NCBI RefSeq assembly: GCF_963853765.1
Contig: NC_088858.1
Location: 6,944,001 to 7,008,000, forward strand
Origin: Magallana gigas
Lineage: Eukaryota
Length of the DNA: 64,000 bases
Direction of reading: 5' to 3'
Positions 20,494 to 59,200 of the stretch are shown here, piece after piece. The position numbers were made by a program, and so were the translations under genes. Under the pieces are notes generated by a model, which saw only the letters and a program-made list of their open reading frames with translations, did not search any database and was not told where the DNA came from. Position 1 is the first letter of the stretch. Every line of letters starts with the position of its first letter.

Positions 20494-23400
20494 ATGAAAC
20501 AGAAGTACACGTTCTGGGAGAAACTGAGTTTGAAATGTGTTCTAGTGGGGGACATGAACGTAGGGAAGTCTAGCTTGGCTGCCCGGATATCTTCGAGGAC
20601 GTTCAAGACGGACTATTCTCCGACTCTGTTCGACAACTATGCAGGTATAGACGGCTGCGGGGTTCTCCAACTGTTAATTTTTTTTGTTTAGAATGACAGG
20701 TTCTTTCAATGGTTTGGCTTAAATCAGAGAAAAGTTTTTTGTATTAAGTCGTTTTCTTGGGTAACGCTGGAATTCTTGACACACCAGAAAAAAGTGAAAG
20801 ATTTAGAAGCAAGACTAAGACCTTCGCAAACAAAATTTCGTGATATTGAGAGTTTTAACTGCTTAAAATAAATGACATTGATTTAGTGAGTATATATGTC
20901 ATTATTGTGTTAAAAAATGACTAAAGAAATAAATAAATGAATATAGTTATAAATGAATAAATAGATTGTAAACTTCATAACCTAATGCATTAGTAATAGG
21001 GCGTAAACTGAATTTTTCTTTGTGTATGTTGTTGAATGTTACAAGGTGCAGTCTACACTAAGGGTATATTACCTGTGCATTAAGTGTCAGGCTGTGGTCA
21101 GGTACATGGAAGGCCCCTGAGTCAGTTACCTGTTAGCAAGGTAACTAACTGTTACACCTGATTGTAATCGCGTTCAGTAACCCGACCCTCGAGGCGGACT
21201 CTGTAATGACTACCTCGCCGTATTTCTTACGTTTGCACTGCATGAACTGAGATGAACTATACAGTATCATTGCAAATCAATTAAATGCAGAAAGTCATTT
21301 ATCAAATTTTCAATTTCAAGAACTTTGAATTTCCATACACATAAATGCCTAGTATGTACAGATTAATTAGAAAAAAGTATAACAACTGGGTCGTTAGAAC
21401 TACATATTGACATCTGTGTATCGACAGCTAACGTCATTTACTTCCTGTAAAAATCCGGTATGTATTGAGGATGTGTAAAATATACGCCAAGCCTGAAAAG
21501 AACTTTCCGACACAAAATCCCTTTAAATATTTCTAGATTTAACTGTTAAAAATCTGTGAGTTTTTATCCGTCTCTGTGCGTTTCCCGACCAACTGCAATT
21601 AGCCCTGATACAGCAATGCATATTTTCTAGTTTGCGTTTGGAATTTGGGTTAACAATATAAAGACATCTTTTAAAATACATGTCCCCCGACCAGTTATAA
21701 TTGGGTTAAATGCAGTTACTAGTGTATATATTGGTCATGCAATGTAAATTAGACATTTGGGATATTGTAAGAAAAAAGAACTAAGTCGATAAGTTGTGTA
21801 ATGCGAATCGTAGCTACTTGAATTGTATGCACACATCCGTAACAAAATAAGCTTGAACATACAAATAATGAAAAAGGCATTTTAGCTGGAATAATATGAC
21901 CTGAAACATTACTTATTGCACAATATTGATCATATAGCACTGATCTTAAGCCTCTTAAATGATATCTCATTAATCCTTGGATTTTGCCTTTAACACACTG
22001 TGACCCAAAGTACATTTTCGAGTATCGGCATTTCCTGCGTTCTTCATTTATTGCATAAAAATCTATATTCCCGGAAATAAACGAATAGAGTAACATGCAA
22101 AGTAAAATTTCCTTGGTAATTTTTTTTACTTGTAATTCATTTTTATATGACAACATATGATGGTTATAATTCTGCCCCGAGCTTGCACAAAGCAGAGACT
22201 TTGAACACATAGGTTTGATCTTTGGAACGATGCATTTACATGTATTGCCATTTTGAATTATCATTATTGCAAATATATGGCTATTGACATTTTAGGTTAT
22301 TTGATACCAAACAATTTCTAAAAACATAGCATTAAATAATACATGCATGTGAGATGTCACCAATTAACTTTATTGTCTTTTTTCTATTTCTTATAGCGAC
22401 TGTTTCAGTACATGGAATCCCATATCACCTGAACCTCTTTGACACGGCTGGAAAGGTAACAATCTAATTAAAATCATTTTTGCTATCCAATTCATGCTTG
22501 AAATATCAACATAAATGCAAAACACCCCATATACAGGTGGTTAATTACATAAATATTTATAGGAATACTAAACAATGCAGTCGGTGTTATACCCTAAATT
22601 TTCATTTTGTTTTAATATACCAACATCTGGATGCAGAAATATGTTTTTTATTCAGCTAACAGTAATATTTCCAGCGGGTGTAAGATATATCATAAATATT
22701 TAACACTGTGTCAAATAATTATGCCAGTGCTAGGTGGCATTTTTGCACCCGTCTAAACTGCATATATTGAAAAATTATATACTGAATTATATATTGAAAA
22801 AATATGCCATATGATAGACCATTGCTTAAAGAGTTTACAACCACCTTTGTCATCATTGTATCTCACCTGTCAGGTGAAATATTTATCTTTCAAAAAATTT
22901 TTACAGGAAAATAATTTTTCCCATAGGAAAAAAACCATATTTCTGTAGGGAAATTTCCAATCGGAGGACAAGAACTTCCTATAGGAATTTCAATTCCGAC
23001 AGGATTTCATAAAATTCGATAGGAGATCTTAATTTCCTATAGGAAAACTACCTGTCTGAATCAAATTCTTGTAGGAAATACCATTCCCCTAATGGAAATA
23101 TAATTCCTTTAGGATTTTTAGAAAATCATATAGGATTGTCAATTTTTTCTGTAGGAGAATCATATCTCTTATATGGGAATTATCATTTTCCTATGGGATA
23201 TTAATTTTTAAAAGTTAATTTCTCACCTGTCAGATGAAACACACAAAAATAAAAAGCGGTATTCTGTAGACAATGGAGTATCATTTGGTATATATGGATG
23301 AAACTGCATCTATAAGCGGGTGCAAAAGTGCCACCTTGGCACTTGCATAATTATCCAGTACAGTGTTATTTAATTGACGTTTATATTAAAATCGATATCA

Positions 23401-25300
23401 GACAATTTGAGCTACATGTATAACACCCCTTTTTACAAGTAGGTATTTTCAGGTGCTATAATAATAAAACGTTGTTAATACAGCACATGAAACATCTACC
23501 AAAATACAATTGTTTTTAATTGTAACTGTATGTGGTATCAGTGGTCCTGTTGTGACTTATGACCAATAAAACGCTTTCTGTTTCACAGGGTACTAAAGTA
23601 CAGATTGCGATAACTGTGGTTCGAACCAACATTGTTCTTGCACAACGCGTTTTACAAAATACTGTGTAACTGACGATTTTATCGTAAATATTTTCAGTCT
23701 CACTGAATGGCTCTTTACTGAAAAATTTATACATATCTAAGAATTTCATATATTTTGTTTATCATATTTGCCACCGTGACTGCAAAAAAAACCCAACAAC
23801 ATCATAATAATAATACAAATGACATAAACAAAGAACCATCTCTTCTAAATATTATCGTATTTACGTCTTATTTTAAGGAGGACTTTTCAAAAGTGCGTGT
23901 GATGTCATACATCAACAGTGACGTCTTTCTAGTGTGTTTTTCCATTGACGATGTTAAGTCGTTAGTGCACGTCCAGGAATCATGGGTACCGGAACTACGT
24001 CAACACGTGCCAAACACGCCATTTATATTGGTGGGTACCAAACTGGATGTACGGTTCCAGCAACCAGATATTCAGGTAGGTAACCGAAAGTAACTTACTG
24101 TCCGTTTTCATACACTCTTTTTCTAAGCCATGAGTTTTGCTATTGTCTAAAATATAAGATGGAAAAAAGAACGAAGCGTCATTAACTGTAGGTTTCCGCC
24201 AATGGAGCTTTACATATATACCTGAATACTTTTTATATTTCTTTATAATGGTTCATCAATGAAGATATATACATTTATATAGCATTATTAAGTTAACTAA
24301 AGGCATCTGAAGCAAGTGTTAACTTATTAGCTTCGTTTGATTTTTGTTTATTATGCAAATTTCAACAATGTTGACCTTATTCTTTGCACACTTCTGGTAT
24401 ATACATATACACTACATAACGCCCTCCACCTCTATAGTAAGAACACTATCGTTAGCTCCTATAATTGTGCGATATCCTGGTTAGAGTGGCGGTTTCCCCT
24501 GCTTCAGGAAGAAGGTCAATATTTTTTGGCTTGATAAGATCGCAATTTCCTGATTGTTCGAATAGTTTACAGGATAAAACACACATATATTATAAGTGTA
24601 ATGTAATCTTCCTTCTCTATAACTATCTATACAGTACGGACAAGGTTGCACGTAGAAACATTTTGATATTTTATAGTGTCGTCCTTATGACCCAGAGGTT
24701 GGGGGTCCTATTTTCGTTCTAGAGAGAAGAGAGGATTTTCAGTACCTTGCTTCAGACCTCACTGTTAGACATACATGTTGTTCCATGTACTACATGTATG
24801 TTGCAGTTAAAGGCGTGCCTATGAGCACTTCCAACTGCCAAAAGCCCATAAATACAAACAAAATCTTCATTTCAAAAATGAATAAATTTAAGTCATACTT
24901 TTCTTGACACATTGTTAAACAAGAAAAAAAAGATTTTACAAGCACAGACAGAAAATTCTTGAGGGAAAATGGATATAAAGATGACGTTTTTGTGCTAACT
25001 AAATCTTTTTTTTTCACCATTTTATTTTACATCAATTTTGCTTTTAAGTTTAGAAACCGTTGTATAAAGCGTTATTGACGTGTTTTCAACTTTTGACAGG
25101 TTCTCGACAGTTCCGCGGTCTCGCCAAAGCAGGGTAAGGAAGTTGCGTCGACGGTGGGTGCGTACAGTTATGTGGAGGTGTCCTCGCTCAGCGCTGACGG
25201 CGTGGACGACTTGATCACAGAGATAGTGGAGGCCGCCAAAGCCAACTGGGAAATCAAGTGCGCTCAGAAAAAGAAGTGTCCCTCTTGCGTCATTGTTTGA
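20494..25300 (+). CDS. Atypical Rho-family small GTPase (Cdc42/Rac-like), 202 aa, 4 exons, C-terminal CAAX (CVIV)
   Basis: Exons 20494-20644, 22397-22455, 23878-24075 and 25100-25300, all GT-AG and in frame. Motifs KCVLVGDMNVGKS, YSPTLFDNY, LFDTAGKEDF, DVFLVCFS, WVPEL, LVGTKLDVR, YVEVSSL, KKKCPSCVIV*. Confidence 0.95.
22704..23365. mobile_element. Foldback-type non-autonomous DNA element, copy 2 (complete), in Rho intron 2
   Basis: cactgtgtcaaataattatgccagtgc ... gcacttgcataattatccagtacagtg. Long imperfect TIRs around a CCTRTAGG array. TSD ambiguous (TTAA/TTAT or ATTT). Confidence 0.8.
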
Positions 25301-53200: not shown

Positions 53201-56200
53201 TCAGATACTGCAAAATATCTGAAGAGGATGGGCTACCTGATTCAGAAGTTTCACAAAAACAACAAAATGACTCCAAGGTAGGTCCACTTTGAGCTATGAT
53301 ATTGTTTTTTACAATAAAAATCGTAAGATATAAGTTTGCTCTCATTTGCTTTTCATGTCCTCCATTTAATGTTAAATTAATATCGTAAGAGTAAGAGTAC
53401 TGATTTTTCGAGGTATAAATACTTTCGATTCTATTTTTGAAACATGTGACAATCAGGGAATTAATTGAAGCTGCTTATACTGGATTATCTTTTATCTATC
53501 AATGTGGAAGATGACACCAGATGTTTGATATACCACATGCATGATTAAAATTACAAGCATTTCTTTTTTTCCTTTTATTGCTTGTTGGCATTTGATTTTG
53601 TGCCTGTAATTAAGTTCACATTGCATCCAATCAAATGATTTAAATAAACTGTGCACTGGCTGGTCTCGGCATGTTCTATAAATAGAATGATGCATGCCCC
53701 TCTGTTACAGTTCCAGTATCGTTGACCTCTCCGAATTCGCAGCGGACGGGGGACAGTAAGCTATGCTTCACTGCATGTTACTATTCTTAGCTTGTTTCCC
53801 TTGACAACAAGCACATCACTGTGGTGATGTACTTTGGTATCTGCATACACATACATTGTACATTGTATTAATCACTCATATCAGCCATGGGTAAAGATCA
53901 TATTAATACACACTAGCTTAGATTAACCTGGTTGAAAGATAGGTATATATTTATAATTGTATACTCTTACTAGTATAACCATTTTGTTTCTGGGGTACAG
54001 TAATTATGTATATTAATATACTTATATTTATCTGACTATTTCACTCTCTGCTAGGATTTATACTTTATTTCTGTACAATTAATTTTAATGCTGTTTAATA
54101 AAAAAAAAATAACATTAAATAATTGACTTGTAGCATCATAAATATAGATATACATCTTCTGGATCTAATTTGTGTATACAAAAGCATGTTTAACTTTTTT
54201 ATATCAATTGTTACAAAATCAACTTCTTAATACCCAGAACATGTATCTGCTTGATGAAGAGTATGATTTATGCATCCTATTTCCTAATATTTACATAATC
54301 ATTGCTATCAAATTGATGTGCATACAACTTCATTTACTTGCATGAAAATGTTTAATTATCTGTGATACGTACTTGTGCATGTTTAGTCACAGTGTGACCT
54401 AGCAATAAAACTTCTCTGTCTTATTTAGGGACGATATCCAGACGTCACAGCAAGTGTTTTCGGACCCACTGGTAAGTTTGCTCTTATTAAATAGTTTAAA
54501 TTCCTTATTTTACGCGAGTACTTAATTCCTGCAATGCTGCTGTTTTGTATCAAATCGTGAGAATATGAAATCTTGAGCACCAACTTTTTGTATTCATTTT
54601 TTATAGTTCAAAACTGTCTGAAAAATAAAAGTGAGATTTTAAAATCTGCAAGAGGTGCTTCTCGCAATTTTATGCGGGTATTAATTCCTCACATTTAATG
54701 AGAAATCTACATTGTATGTCATAAGTTTGAGATCTTTGCATGTCTGTGGAGCTAAAAGATATGTTAAGGTACCAGTATTCTGACATTGCCTGTATTCATT
54801 TGTTTCAGACCCAGTCGCAGACTTCTCTCACTTACTCCCAGCATTCCACACATTCCCAAATGTCACATGATCAAAGATTTGATCGAGGTAAACTTCACAA
54901 CAGCAATGTATATTATAATTATAATAGCATTCTTTTAACTTTTCTATTCTCTTACTTTCATATACATGTACATGTAGATGAAGAGGTACGAAATTGTGAT
55001 ATGTGAATTTAAAAGTGTTTGACTTGCTAAAAGATGGAATTTTTTTTTTAACAGATTTATCACAGTCTTCCATTGAGGATTTCTATCGCCAATCCCAGCA
55101 GAGTCTGGAGACCACTCACAGTGATATCATCCATTATAATGGAGGTCACATGATTACTGACAGCCCTGTGATTGGTCAGCACACGTCCATGCAGAGGAGC
55201 GAGTCTCAGAAGTCCCCGCTACTGCCAGCGTATCGCCCCAGTCCAAGCTATGATGAAGTGATGCGGCGTAGAATGAGTCAGCAGTCACCTGCTGTACACA
55301 GCTCTCCTATACTCCAGTCTCATCACCACCCCACCACCCTCCCAGACCACAAACTCTACCCCCAGACCTCTCCCAGGCTCATACAGGATGCAATGTTGTT
55401 ACAGCAGCCTGCACCTAATATCATGTTCAACCCTGATGTTACTTTTACAAATGGAAATGCCTATATGAATAGTGAACTTATGTCTTCCTATAGCAACAAC
55501 ACAATGTATGCTAACAGAGCAGCTTTCTCTACAGATCTGGCTAATAGAGGCAGTAACTTAGTCATGCAGCCTACCTACAGCTCGCCAGAGTTGAATACCC
55601 AGCTTCCCCAGTTCAGTATCAAGGAGGCTGAGCCTGTTCATTACAAACCTCCTCCCCCATATCCGCGGTCTAGCACCAGCACTCCAGATCTTGCCAACCA
55701 AACTGTGAGGAGTACTGTGGGGGAAAGTCCAGATTTAGTGTCACGGAAAAATCTGGGGGCTAAGGCAAGTTTTAATGGAAGTATAGAAAGTGTTCCAAAG
55801 GTTGTGGCAGATCACAGTGAACATAGCACTTACTCTATGAACTCTGAAAGTGTTGTCAAAACTAAAGAAAGTGCAATAAACCAAAGACACACACAGGAGA
55901 CAGTGGAGCAAACATTGGTCTTGCCAGACATATCCAAAGCAAGGTTGAGTCCTGATATTACAGTTCAGCATGCAGAGACAGATGATGCCTCTAGTGATCA
56001 CTCCGGTGCTACCTTTCACATCAAAGACACAGACAGTGAAAAGGAAGATGATAGGAGTCCAAAGCTGGACAGTGTCAAATCAAAAATTGCTATAAAATAT
56101 GTTGCTCCCAATAAAGCACCCCCTCCCTCCACCACCAAAGAGCTGATCACTCGAAGGGAAAGCTTCCGTCGACAGATGATAGCACGGTCAGCTCCAGAAA

Positions 56201-59200
56201 ATCCCATCGGAAAGGAAGAGTCCCAGGATCCAGTAGTGATCCCGGAGCACACAGATGGGGGTAATGTAACGGTACCACCCACCACTAGTCAGTCCACATT
56301 CATCCGTCGCTTTTCCAGCAGGCGTCTGTCCCACAAGAAGCCAGAATTGCCCCCCATCACCCGGCGGGCATCTGACATAGGAGCCAAGTTCACAGGGCTG
56401 GATGTAGTACCTCCAGTCAGTAATTACGTGAGACAAGTCAGTGCAGAGTCTGAGGAACAGGAGAAACCAGTGGAGGATAGTGATTCAGACAACGACAAGG
56501 TAAATACTGAGAGAAAGCAAGTTCAGGGCTTGGTTTAAAATGGGCTGCAAACATGTACATATTCCTAAAGAGAATGAATTGTTGGAAATTCACTTATACT
56601 TCCGGTATGATATTAACGACATTATTTAGAAATCCTTTTCTCCATTAGTTTTATAGATGTAAGCAAGAATTCTGGTTACAATTAAAATTTACTTGGAAAA
56701 AATGCTTTAGAAAATTAAGAATTCACATTCTGAAAAACTTTAGGACACCACAGTAAAACTAAAGATGGGGCCTCTGAAAATGGCAGCTATGAATGGTCTT
56801 ACAATGTCACGGCCAATGGTATTAGCTCTTATGAATGACGAAAGCAGAGCACCAAAGGATGAAAGGGTAGGTGTTATAACTACAATGATTTCTGGCAAGT
56901 TTAAAATAAGTACAATGTTTATCCAACTTACTGGTGAAAGTTTTGCTTGATTCTTGTACATTGGGTTTGGAGTAGGATTAGTCCGTTTTTTACATATTTG
57001 AAAGTACATTGATAAAGAAACTTCATGAGTTTTTCAATAAGACTAAGGTTTATGTTATAAAGTTCCACATAAGACAATTTCTTTTTTTTCAGGAATGTAT
57101 TGAAAATGAATTAAGTGAAGCATTTTGCACAACAGTTTAAAATCATATAATCATTATGTGTTTACAGAGGAAGTTACTAGAAAACAAACTGTCAGAAAAC
57201 TTGGTGTTTAAAGAATTTGAGGAGATTCCAAAGAAGGTACAGTCAGCTGAGTGTAGCGTGGCTCGACTCCCAGAGAATGAGATCAGAAACAGGTTCAAGG
57301 ATGTCCTGCCGTATGACATCACTCGAGTCAAACTGACCCCACGGAAGGACAATCACTCTGGTTATATCAATGGTTCACACATAAAGGTACGCACCACTAA
57401 GTTATTAAAATACATGGGTAATTTTTTTTATTATGGTTCTACACAACTACTGAACATAAATCTGTTACTTTTAATCAAACAAGCTTCTAGTATGTTACTG
57501 AAGTTCAGCTTCTTATATTTTGTAATCGGTTGTACATTGTAAATTTTGTCTGTTTAGTTGTCCTTCGGGGATCGAGTCTGGTGGTACATAGCCACACAAG
57601 CCCCGCTAGAAGATACATCCTCCGACTTCTGGCAGATGATTTGGGAGCAAGAAGTGGATGTTATAGCCATGTTGACAGACCTAGCTGTAAGTCCCTCTAC
57701 TTTATCTAGTAGCATTGTGTATTTTTTATTAATAGACCTAAACATAAGTGTCTATAATTACAGGAAATTTCAATCAAGTTATGGTTGCAACAAATGTAGA
57801 CAATTCCCTTTTATGTTGATTGCACATTAATTACACATATCCAAGGTGAAATTAGTGTGTGTATGTATTAATATGTTTCTCTGTAAAACAATAAACATGT
57901 AAATTCTTCTGTTTGCAATGAACATTTAAGCAAATACTAAATTACTTTATACTCATAGATTTAGTGTAAAAAATGAGGAGGATTTTATTGTTTACACTTT
58001 ACACTGTATTGTGCTTCATCTAGAAGTGACCTTATCACTTTAATTTTACTGACCTTACTTTTATATATACAGGAGCAAGGGAAACAGAAATGTCATACCT
58101 ACTGGCCTCAGGAGATTGGTCCAGAGCACAAAATAGTGTTTGGACAGGTAAATACATAATACATGTACATAACTGACACAAATAGTTCATTAGAAGGGGC
58201 CACAAATCTGATAATTGATTAGAACAGAATGTGTACCAGTTTGTCATGTATATGTAGTTTGTACATATAGTTTTGGGTGGCCCTCCTGTTCTGTAATGAC
58301 TCATTCTGTGACATTACTACATAGTTCTGAACGTTTTGTTTTTGTTTTTAGTTTGAGGTGACCCTCCTGTTCTGTAACGATTCGCTGTGTTACATCACAA
58401 ACAGAATATCCGTGGTACATCTCCCCACCAAGAAGGAGAGACAGGTGTGGCACCTACAGTACACTGACTGGCCAGACCACGGCTGTCCCGAGGACATGTA
58501 CGGCTTCCTAGGTAAATACCTCATATATACCTCACACTCACACATACCTCATACTTCACACATTCAGTACAGGGTATGGACAGCTTGTAATCACATCGTA
58601 CTACATTTATAATTAATTAACTGTAATGGAATGTTATTGATAAGTAAACAGTTATAAGATGGTTGTTAAACCAATAAACAGCTACCAATCAGAATAAATA
58701 TACATGCATGTATGTTGCTATGTAAAAGTTCTGTAAATATTAATGTTTTGCAAAACAATATGTTAAAATAATGTGAAAGTTGAATTATACATGGTACAAT
58801 GTGCCAGTGGATATTCATGTATACCTATATAATGATATGAGGTTGTGTTTAGTTGAAACATGACTGTAATGGATTTGTTTTGGTTGTAGGATTTCTGGAT
58901 GAAGTAGACTCGGTTCAGCGACTGGCTGAGAGTGAGGAGGGCAGTGGTAAGAAGTCCCCCATCGTGGTCCACTGCAGCGCTGGGGTTGGGAGAACGGGTG
59001 TGGTCATCCTTACCCAGGTCATGAAGTGGTGTCTGGAACACAACTTTGTGAGTATTGCAAAACCATTACAGATAGAAGTAACAATTAATTTTATTGAAAT
59101 CATTTACAATTTATTTGCAATGTAATATACAATTCATGAATAAACAGTAGTTCTGGAATTTAATTTTATTTTATGAAGAATTTTCACCGTTTTTTGTACC

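Follow-up and report, generated by a model that had tools for sequence, protein, structure and literature searches.

In a stretch of 64,000 nucleotides from the oyster Magallana gigas (contig NC_088858.1 of RefSeq assembly GCF_963853765.1, positions 6,944,001 to 7,008,000; here called the window), a Rho GTPase gene is located on the + strand at 20494-25300. This intact gene is expressed and strongly constrained by purifying selection, and its protein carries methionine and lysine at the positions of Gly12 and Gln61 of Ras and Cdc42. We consider it probable that this functional gene represents a mollusc-wide atypical Rho subfamily, whose members would be locked in the GTP-bound state and anchored by lipids in the manner of Rnd and RhoH.

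Gene structure, transcription and constraint

The spliced window sequence yields four exons with a coding sequence of 609 nt and a protein of 202 aa, and all three introns have GT..AG borders. Coding exon 1 (20494..20644, 151 nt, ending in phase 1) encodes a 12-residue N-terminal extension, the P-loop GDMNVGKS (20548-20571, from residue 19) and switch I with Phe37, Tyr41 and Thr44; within the P-loop, codon 21 (ATG, 20554..20556) places Met at the Gly12 position. Behind intron 1 (20645..22396, 1752 nt), coding exon 2 (22397..22455) has only 59 nt, a length that is kept in other oysters and in an oyster paralog. It ends with the DTAGK of switch II (DTAGKEDF, from residue 66), and its final codon, codon 70 (AAG, 22453..22455), which abuts the gtaaca donor, places Lys at the Gln61 position. 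Intron 2 (22456..23877, 1422 nt) is followed by coding exon 3 (23878..24075, 198 nt; Pfam Ras, E 1.2e-12), which encodes the remainder of switch II, core beta strands, the G4 motif TKLD (from residue 124) and the beginning of a shortened Rho insert. Intron 3 (24076..25099, 1024 nt) separates it from coding exon 4 (25100..25300, 201 nt including the stop at 25298-25300). This last exon contributes the remainder of the insert, the G5 motif EVSSL (from residue 162) with Ser165 at the Ala159 position (TCG, 25184-25186) and the C-terminal helix. A polybasic stretch is also part of it, Cys196 is encoded at 25277-25279 and the CAAX box CVIV at 25286-25297, so that the protein ends in KKKCPSCVIV. All these features are on the + strand.

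Transcription of this model is directly observed. PolyA RNA reads and contigs from RNA libraries join the exons exactly at 20644|22397, 22455|23878 and 24075|25100; the first joint is found in X22 reads as well as in an X9 contig, and the third in an X9 contig whose shorter flank of the joint spans 198 nt. The RNA depth over the exons lies on the strand expected of a + strand mRNA, and no variant is listed at codons 21 or 70 in the RNA data. Among three polyA libraries of equal size the depth of the gene differs more than 10-fold, which is a weak hint of regulated expression. The earlier note, made from the letters of the window alone, had described the motifs, the key residues, the short insert, the CAAX box and an unbroken four-exon open reading frame (ORF); splicing, the alignment to Cdc42 and the RNA joints place all of them where it had put them.

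The gene is single-copy, the next-best match to exon 3 in the genome being 47-49% identical. The same exon plan of 151/59/198/201(198) nt is obtained when the Ostrea and Saccostrea genes are spliced from genomic DNA. Checking selection in other molluscs, as the earlier note had suggested, gave a ratio of nonsynonymous to synonymous substitution rates (dN/dS) of about 0.04-0.12 among four oysters (YN00/NG86), which indicates strong purifying selection. Since synonymous divergence is saturated in most oyster pairs and its NG86 estimate is undefined for two of them, YN00 and the closest pair were relied on; the least saturated pair gave 0.045-0.068. All four oysters have AAG as codon 70; for codon 21, three of them, including Saccostrea, have ATG, and Ostrea has ACG (Thr).

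Two further observations concern the introns. One X9 RNA contig (22241-22397, depth about 10) keeps most of intron 1 and then passes from a GT at 22242 to the normal acceptor of exon 2; it may represent an unspliced precursor or a minor alternative donor. Intron 2 contains nested repeats resembling a miniature inverted-repeat transposable element (about 22681-23388), with outer inverted arms at 22681-22751 and 23317-23388 and an inner unit between 19-nt direct repeats at 22861 and 23221. This element draws many RNA reads that continue into unlike sequence, and copies elsewhere are therefore transcribed.

Protein features and predicted structure

Pfam Ras matches on exons 1, 3 and 4 and the presence of the G1-G5 motifs (GxxxxGKS, T35, DTAG, TKLD, SSL) characterize the product as a Ras-type G domain. 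In a HMMER alignment to human Cdc42, Met21 falls on Gly12 and Lys70 on Gln61, and the equivalents of Phe28, Tyr32, Thr35, Asp57 and Gly60 are intact. Between G4 and G5 the protein has extra residues, 3 fewer than Cdc42 has in its Rho insert. In switch II, the equivalents of Tyr64, Arg66 and Pro69 of Cdc42 are F, K and V.

A confident AlphaFold2 model of the G domain reached a predicted local distance difference test (pLDDT) of 82 and a predicted template modelling score (pTM) of 0.81. The pLDDT is about 49 in the insert region, and no insert helix appears in the model. Its fold is Rho-like, with template modelling (TM) scores of 0.77-0.82 to RhoA and Cdc42, and effector-bound structures of Cdc42, RhoA and Rac match it best in the PDB. 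Identities from the Foldseek alignments are 41% to Cdc42, 40% to Rac1, 38-40% to RhoU, 37% to RhoA and 35% to RhoH.

Conservation across molluscs

Orthologs were searched with exon 3 alone first and then with full-length relatives as queries. They were found in oysters (Saccostrea, Ostrea, Crassostrea virginica), a scallop, mussels, heterodont clams, Solemya, many gastropods, Octopus, Argonauta and a chiton, and none of the species sampled from these four molluscan classes has a broken ORF. The alignment of the clade comprises 43 sequences, and part of the sequences used derive from Logan.

Glycine occurs at the Gly12 position in none of 42 clade members, which have T (13), S (11), A (8), M (4), E (3), C (2) or P (1) instead, and position 13 is likewise variable. 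At the Gln61 position the 43 sequences have K (25), R (2) or Q (16). The glutamine (16/43) belongs to gastropods, cephalopods, the chiton and Solemya, and autobranch bivalves have Lys except for Arg in mytilids and Asn in a second oyster paralog. The Met/Lys pair of the window gene is thus not a set of private errors. Across all 43 sequences the equivalents of G10, G15, K16, S/T17, Y32, T35, F37, D38, D57, G60, D118 and S158 are invariant. Since the G1-G5 ligands and the effector residues do not change while positions 12, 13 and 61 vary, nucleotide binding and the effector face appear to have been kept and the catalytic positions freed. Also invariant are Phe65, the equivalent of Phe56 (Trp in Rac and Rho), and the CAAX cysteine Cys199; Cys196 is kept in at least 90% of the clade, and most members end in CCxCaaX.

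The earlier note had counted three activating-type changes, of which those at positions 12 and 61 stand. Ser at the Ala159 position was rejected as a third one: it occurs in 32/43 clade members, and many Rac-type sequences that are canonical in having GDGAVGKT and Gln61 have it too, as ECSSL. It is a common natural variant and probably neutral. Residue 61 as read from ORF fragments of exon 3 alone (P0002, P0014 and others) was also discarded, since the residue before EDF is translated intron in these fragments. A protein of 786 aa from an ENA metagenome contig (P0003) has three tandem Rho domains, the first of which (GDTEVGKS, DTAGKEDF) combines a non-Gly12 residue with Lys61 like the oyster protein and falls outside the mollusc clade.

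Phylogeny and order of the substitutions

Two trees were calculated with IQ-TREE (LG+C20 PMSF) on 52 and 55 rows, in which oyster RhoU was represented by its last exon only (C-terminal two thirds) and RhoH, RhoV, Rnd, RhoBTB and Mtl were left out. The molluscan sequences were monophyletic with supports of 93/78 and 94/85 (ultrafast bootstrap 93-94), and the branching order of chiton, cephalopods, gastropods and bivalves corresponds to the species relationships, which is the pattern expected of vertical descent within Mollusca. The clade was not nested in Cdc42 proper, RhoJ/Q, Rac or oyster RhoU; it also stayed outside a 'Tc10-like' pair from Lingula and Candidula. The first tree places it within the Cdc42 branch, apart from Rac (94/92). 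The subfamily belongs to the Rac/Cdc42-like part of the Rho family, and its Phe56, as in Cdc42, is a hint of the Cdc42 branch.

The sister of the clade (91/76) is a group of bivalve paralogs formed by Pecten P0041, Ylistrum P0376 and an oyster gene at C6:47.80 Mb. These have a GDGG(V/T)GKT P-loop, Gln61 in the scallops, a short insert and no CAAX box. The oyster member, the ortholog of P0041 and P0376, is located at C6 about 47796394-47800986 (-) and combines a short Rho insert with the canonical P-loop GDGGTGKT. It adjoins a further Rho-like gene (C6:47787437-47789646, +), possibly RhoBTB, in which GDDSVGKT puts Asp in place of Gly12 and the G5 (FFESS) is divergent.

Mapping on the tree requires one change for the loss of Gly12 and one for Gln61 to Lys/Arg. 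On this mapping Gly12 was lost once, on the stem of the subfamily, and Lys61 arose once and later, on the stem of the autobranch bivalves, where it is placed because the protobranch Solemya still has Gln. Of the Met/Lys pair, from which the earlier note had considered an independent lineage possible, the loss of Gly12 thus defines the clade, whereas Lys61 is a later feature of bivalves. A second oyster member of the clade at C6:28,808,696-28,815,996 (+) has four exons of the same layout and phases and encodes 207 aa, with GDTKSGKT (Thr12), DTAGNHEM (Asn61, His62), the G5 motif ECSSK and the C-terminus ECCFIV. It groups with the mytilid sequences (Arg61), where long-branch effects are possible. 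Its Thr12 and Asn61 suggest that drift at the catalytic positions continues within a preserved fold.

A distinct atypical lineage is thereby supported, but not the lophotrochozoan breadth that the earlier note had proposed: on present evidence the subfamily is Mollusca-wide and dates probably from early molluscan evolution. In a profile search of limited sensitivity no non-mollusc member scored above ordinary Cdc42, and high-scoring matches from fish and firefly were set aside because they are gene models of tandem or fused Cdc42. When the C-terminal half of the chiton sequence served as query in a search aimed at RhoH, 2 proteins only were returned.

Proposed mechanism and alternative explanations

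In small GTPases, Gly12 leaves space for the arginine finger of the GTPase-activating protein (GAP), and Gln61 positions the attacking water. In Ras, Rac, Cdc42 and RhoA a substituted Gly12 blocks this finger, and Q61K is a classic, strongly hydrolysis-deficient oncogenic change of Ras. To judge from its residues and from the biochemistry of Ras and Rho, the oyster protein would bind GTP and would hydrolyze it neither alone nor with the arginine finger of a RhoGAP; it would be constitutively GTP-bound, as are Rnd1-3 and RhoH. Drift at positions 12, 13 and 61 beside invariant binding residues is the pattern expected once hydrolysis is no longer selected. The conserved effector face (equivalents of Thr35, Phe37, Asp38 and Tyr40) would engage effectors of the Cdc42/Rac type, which are plausible partners. 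Prenylation of the CAAX box is probable, as is palmitoylation at one or two conserved cysteines upstream of it. Prenylation plus palmitoylation is known from H-Ras, RhoB and TC10, and by this analogy the CCxCaaX ending suggests that the lipid anchors would keep the protein on membranes independently of the Rho guanine nucleotide dissociation inhibitor (RhoGDI). The output would then be set by the amount made, the site of anchoring and the rate of degradation.

Several points weigh against a GTP-locked subfamily. The locked state is read from residues, and it is motifs that predict the lipid anchors and the binding of effectors. Since Gln61 is retained in gastropods, cephalopods and the chiton, the protein of the ancestor may have been impaired only in part. 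With partial rows added, the tree backbone became a polytomy, and RhoH, RhoV, Rnd, RhoBTB and Mtl are not among its rows. Furthermore, certain GTPases that have no Gln61 can nevertheless be turned off by a dedicated GAP which brings in the catalytic residue; RapGAP acting on Rap is an example. A normally cycling switch, in which the substitutions are tolerated or a lineage-specific GAP provides such a residue in trans, would agree with these 16 Gln61 members and with the good conservation of switch II near position 61; the strict conservation of Lys61 in bivalves, which does not drift, could likewise point to a role of its own. We regard this explanation as unlikely, since seven different residues, and never Gly, occupy position 12, close relatives have K, R, N or Q at position 61, and the established effects of Gly12 substitutions and Ras Q61K speak against hydrolysis. 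A related possibility, which we rate as clearly less probable still, takes Lys61 as a selected functional residue, because it is strictly kept (AAG in four oysters, Lys in 25 bivalve sequences). It might contact the gamma-phosphate in cis and lock GTP, or be the handle of a bivalve-specific off-switch that would act by lysine modification or by a GAP bringing its own catalytic residue.

The clade might instead be the invertebrate ortholog of vertebrate RhoH, which would give a known atypical subfamily a deep origin. A chordate RhoH cluster ranked first in the ESM Atlas feature search (0.98), RhoH is among the top Foldseek matches (TM 0.81/0.85), and both have a short insert, a residue other than Gly at position 12, a KCVLVGD start and Ser after the Lys-Thr/Ser of the P-loop; the cephalopod members even have the same GDSAVGK as RhoH. 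These common traits are, however, those expected to converge after loss of hydrolysis. The identity to RhoH is 35%, compared to 41% for Cdc42 and 40% for Rac1 and RhoU, and the clade has the Cdc42-like Phe56, FDNYA and WVPE where human RhoH has Trp56, YENTG and WIGE. By inspection, all of these RhoH features, together with the motif of RhoH that resembles an immunoreceptor tyrosine-based activation motif (ITAM; Tyr73-Ala86) and its C-terminal LFSINE insert (PMC8072805), are absent from the oyster protein, and the table of a 2020 metazoan survey lists RhoH only in vertebrate rows. Orthology to RhoH is in our opinion very unlikely. Only a slim chance is given to a pseudo-GTPase, nucleotide-free or GDP-locked, that would serve as a scaffold or as a sink for guanine nucleotide exchange factors (GEFs) or effectors: the changes at the Tyr64, Arg66 and Pro69 equivalents may disturb GEF contacts and the insert helix is lost, but the nucleotide and Mg2+ ligands of G1-G5 are strictly conserved throughout the clade, which is hard to explain without nucleotide binding. 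A decaying or functionless Cdc42 duplicate with unconstrained catalytic residues might be suspected from the automatic name 'cdc42 homolog' and from an identity of only 35-41% to every canonical Rho. It is refuted for practical purposes by intact ORFs in four classes, the low dN/dS, a spliced and polyadenylated mRNA, invariant nucleotide-binding residues and a gene tree that follows the species tree.

Annotation and published surveys

The window protein is letter-identical to P0277, the NCBI entry 'cdc42 homolog [Magallana gigas]' (UniRef name 'Cdc42-like protein'), whose protein cluster is found on 472 contigs. Most named orthologs are automatically named Cdc42 or Rac homologs, and a few are 'hypothetical' or 'uncharacterized protein'. 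The strings GDMNVGKS, DTAGKED and MKQKYTFW do not occur in the supplement of a 2015 bivalve survey, which has Rnd, RhoU, Mig, 'Tc10' and RhoBTB as separate oyster genes, and the 2020 survey table contains no such oyster gene. Full-text literature searches found no description of the lineage. The 'Tc10' of the bivalve survey was considered as the window gene and rejected, being a different sequence with GDGAIGKT and Gln61. The gene is accordingly annotated already but undescribed within the literature searched.

Other features of the window and the genome

Two neighbouring ORFs of 330 and 256 aa at 38751-40537 (-) of the window resemble a pogo/Tigger-like transposon, the first with HTH_psq and DDE_1 domains. 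At 55003-57542 (+), a low-complexity ORF of 511 aa without a Pfam match is followed by an exon that starts a protein-tyrosine-phosphatase domain; both probably belong to one gene of a non-receptor protein tyrosine phosphatase. Elsewhere in the genome, tandem arrays of RhoA-like genes are located at C3:5.24-5.26 Mb, where the copies are single-exon and full-length with GDGSTGKT, and at C4:50.87-50.89 Mb. One of the C4 copies has the switch II DTSGKRE and is a further natural case of Lys at the Gln position.

Significance

Catalogues of Rho proteins distinguish eight or nine subfamilies, and only Rnd, RhoH and RhoBTB are treated as hydrolysis-deficient. A clade that is missing from the surveys and present in four molluscan classes would mean that the same hydrolysis-deficient design was reached separately. 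Nothing known about small GTPases is overturned by this, but the order of events becomes readable, from the loss of Gly12 through the replacement of Gln61 in bivalves to the drift of the catalytic site in later duplicates. The natural series of Gln61, Lys61, Arg61 and Asn61 on a non-Gly12 background might be used to learn how far each step abolishes hydrolysis. If Lys61 should prove to be a functional residue, this would be a new mode of Rho switch control. For commercially important oysters, the protein is a candidate regulator of the cytoskeleton or of membrane traffic. The label 'cdc42 homolog' on most of the named RefSeq and UniProt entries needs correcting.

Comparison with known Rho systems

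Cdc42 is the closest sequence match in PDB (158 bits; 41-44% identity to the oyster protein), and the clade has Phe56, the switch I sequence FDNYA, WVPE and the CAAX box in common with it. Unlike Cdc42, the clade lacks Gly12 and its bivalve members lack Gln61; the oyster protein furthermore differs by an insert 3 residues shorter, without a predicted insert helix, by the 12-residue N-terminal extension and by extra cysteines before the CAAX box. The true Cdc42 genes of the oyster, CgCdc42-1 and -2, are separate and canonical, and both trees show Cdc42 proper as a group by itself. The same holds for RhoJ and RhoQ, whose own group (100/100) does not include the clade. RhoU resembles the oyster protein in a Foldseek alignment that spans the N-terminal extension (38-40% identity), and a phase-0 intron after codon 61 is common to the window gene and oyster RhoU. 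RhoU and RhoV differ in keeping Gly12 and Gln61, in a full insert, in a proline-rich N-terminus and in their ends CCFV, FCFV or CCFL, and CgRhoU (C6:19.2 Mb) lies outside the clade in the tree.

Among the atypical members, Rnd1-3, RhoH and RhoBTB lack Gly12, Ala59 or Gln61 and are GTPase-deficient and constitutively GTP-bound (PMC4974793; PMC8072805). RhoH and the oyster protein are alike in substitutions at both 12 and 61 (Ser/Asn in RhoH), in a shortened insert and in the CAAX box, and they differ in the RhoH-specific motifs listed above. Rnd proteins are substituted at 12, 59 and 61 and constitutively GTP-bound (PMC4974793), and the mytilid members share the P-loop GDSECGK with CgRnd. Rnd proteins differ from the oyster protein, which has Lys70, a short C-terminus and CVIV, by Ser61, by a long extension at the C-terminus and by a CAAX box of the farnesyl type that ends in Met; CgRnd itself is a separate oyster gene of different sequence. 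The same two positions are altered in oncogenic mutants of Ras and Rac (G12V, Q61K/L), and the top PDB sequence match, 1A4R, has Val at position 12 in the aligned sequence. Whereas those are somatic lesions of a cycling switch, the molluscan clade carries its substitutions in the germline, where selection has maintained these ancient changes in a dedicated paralog.

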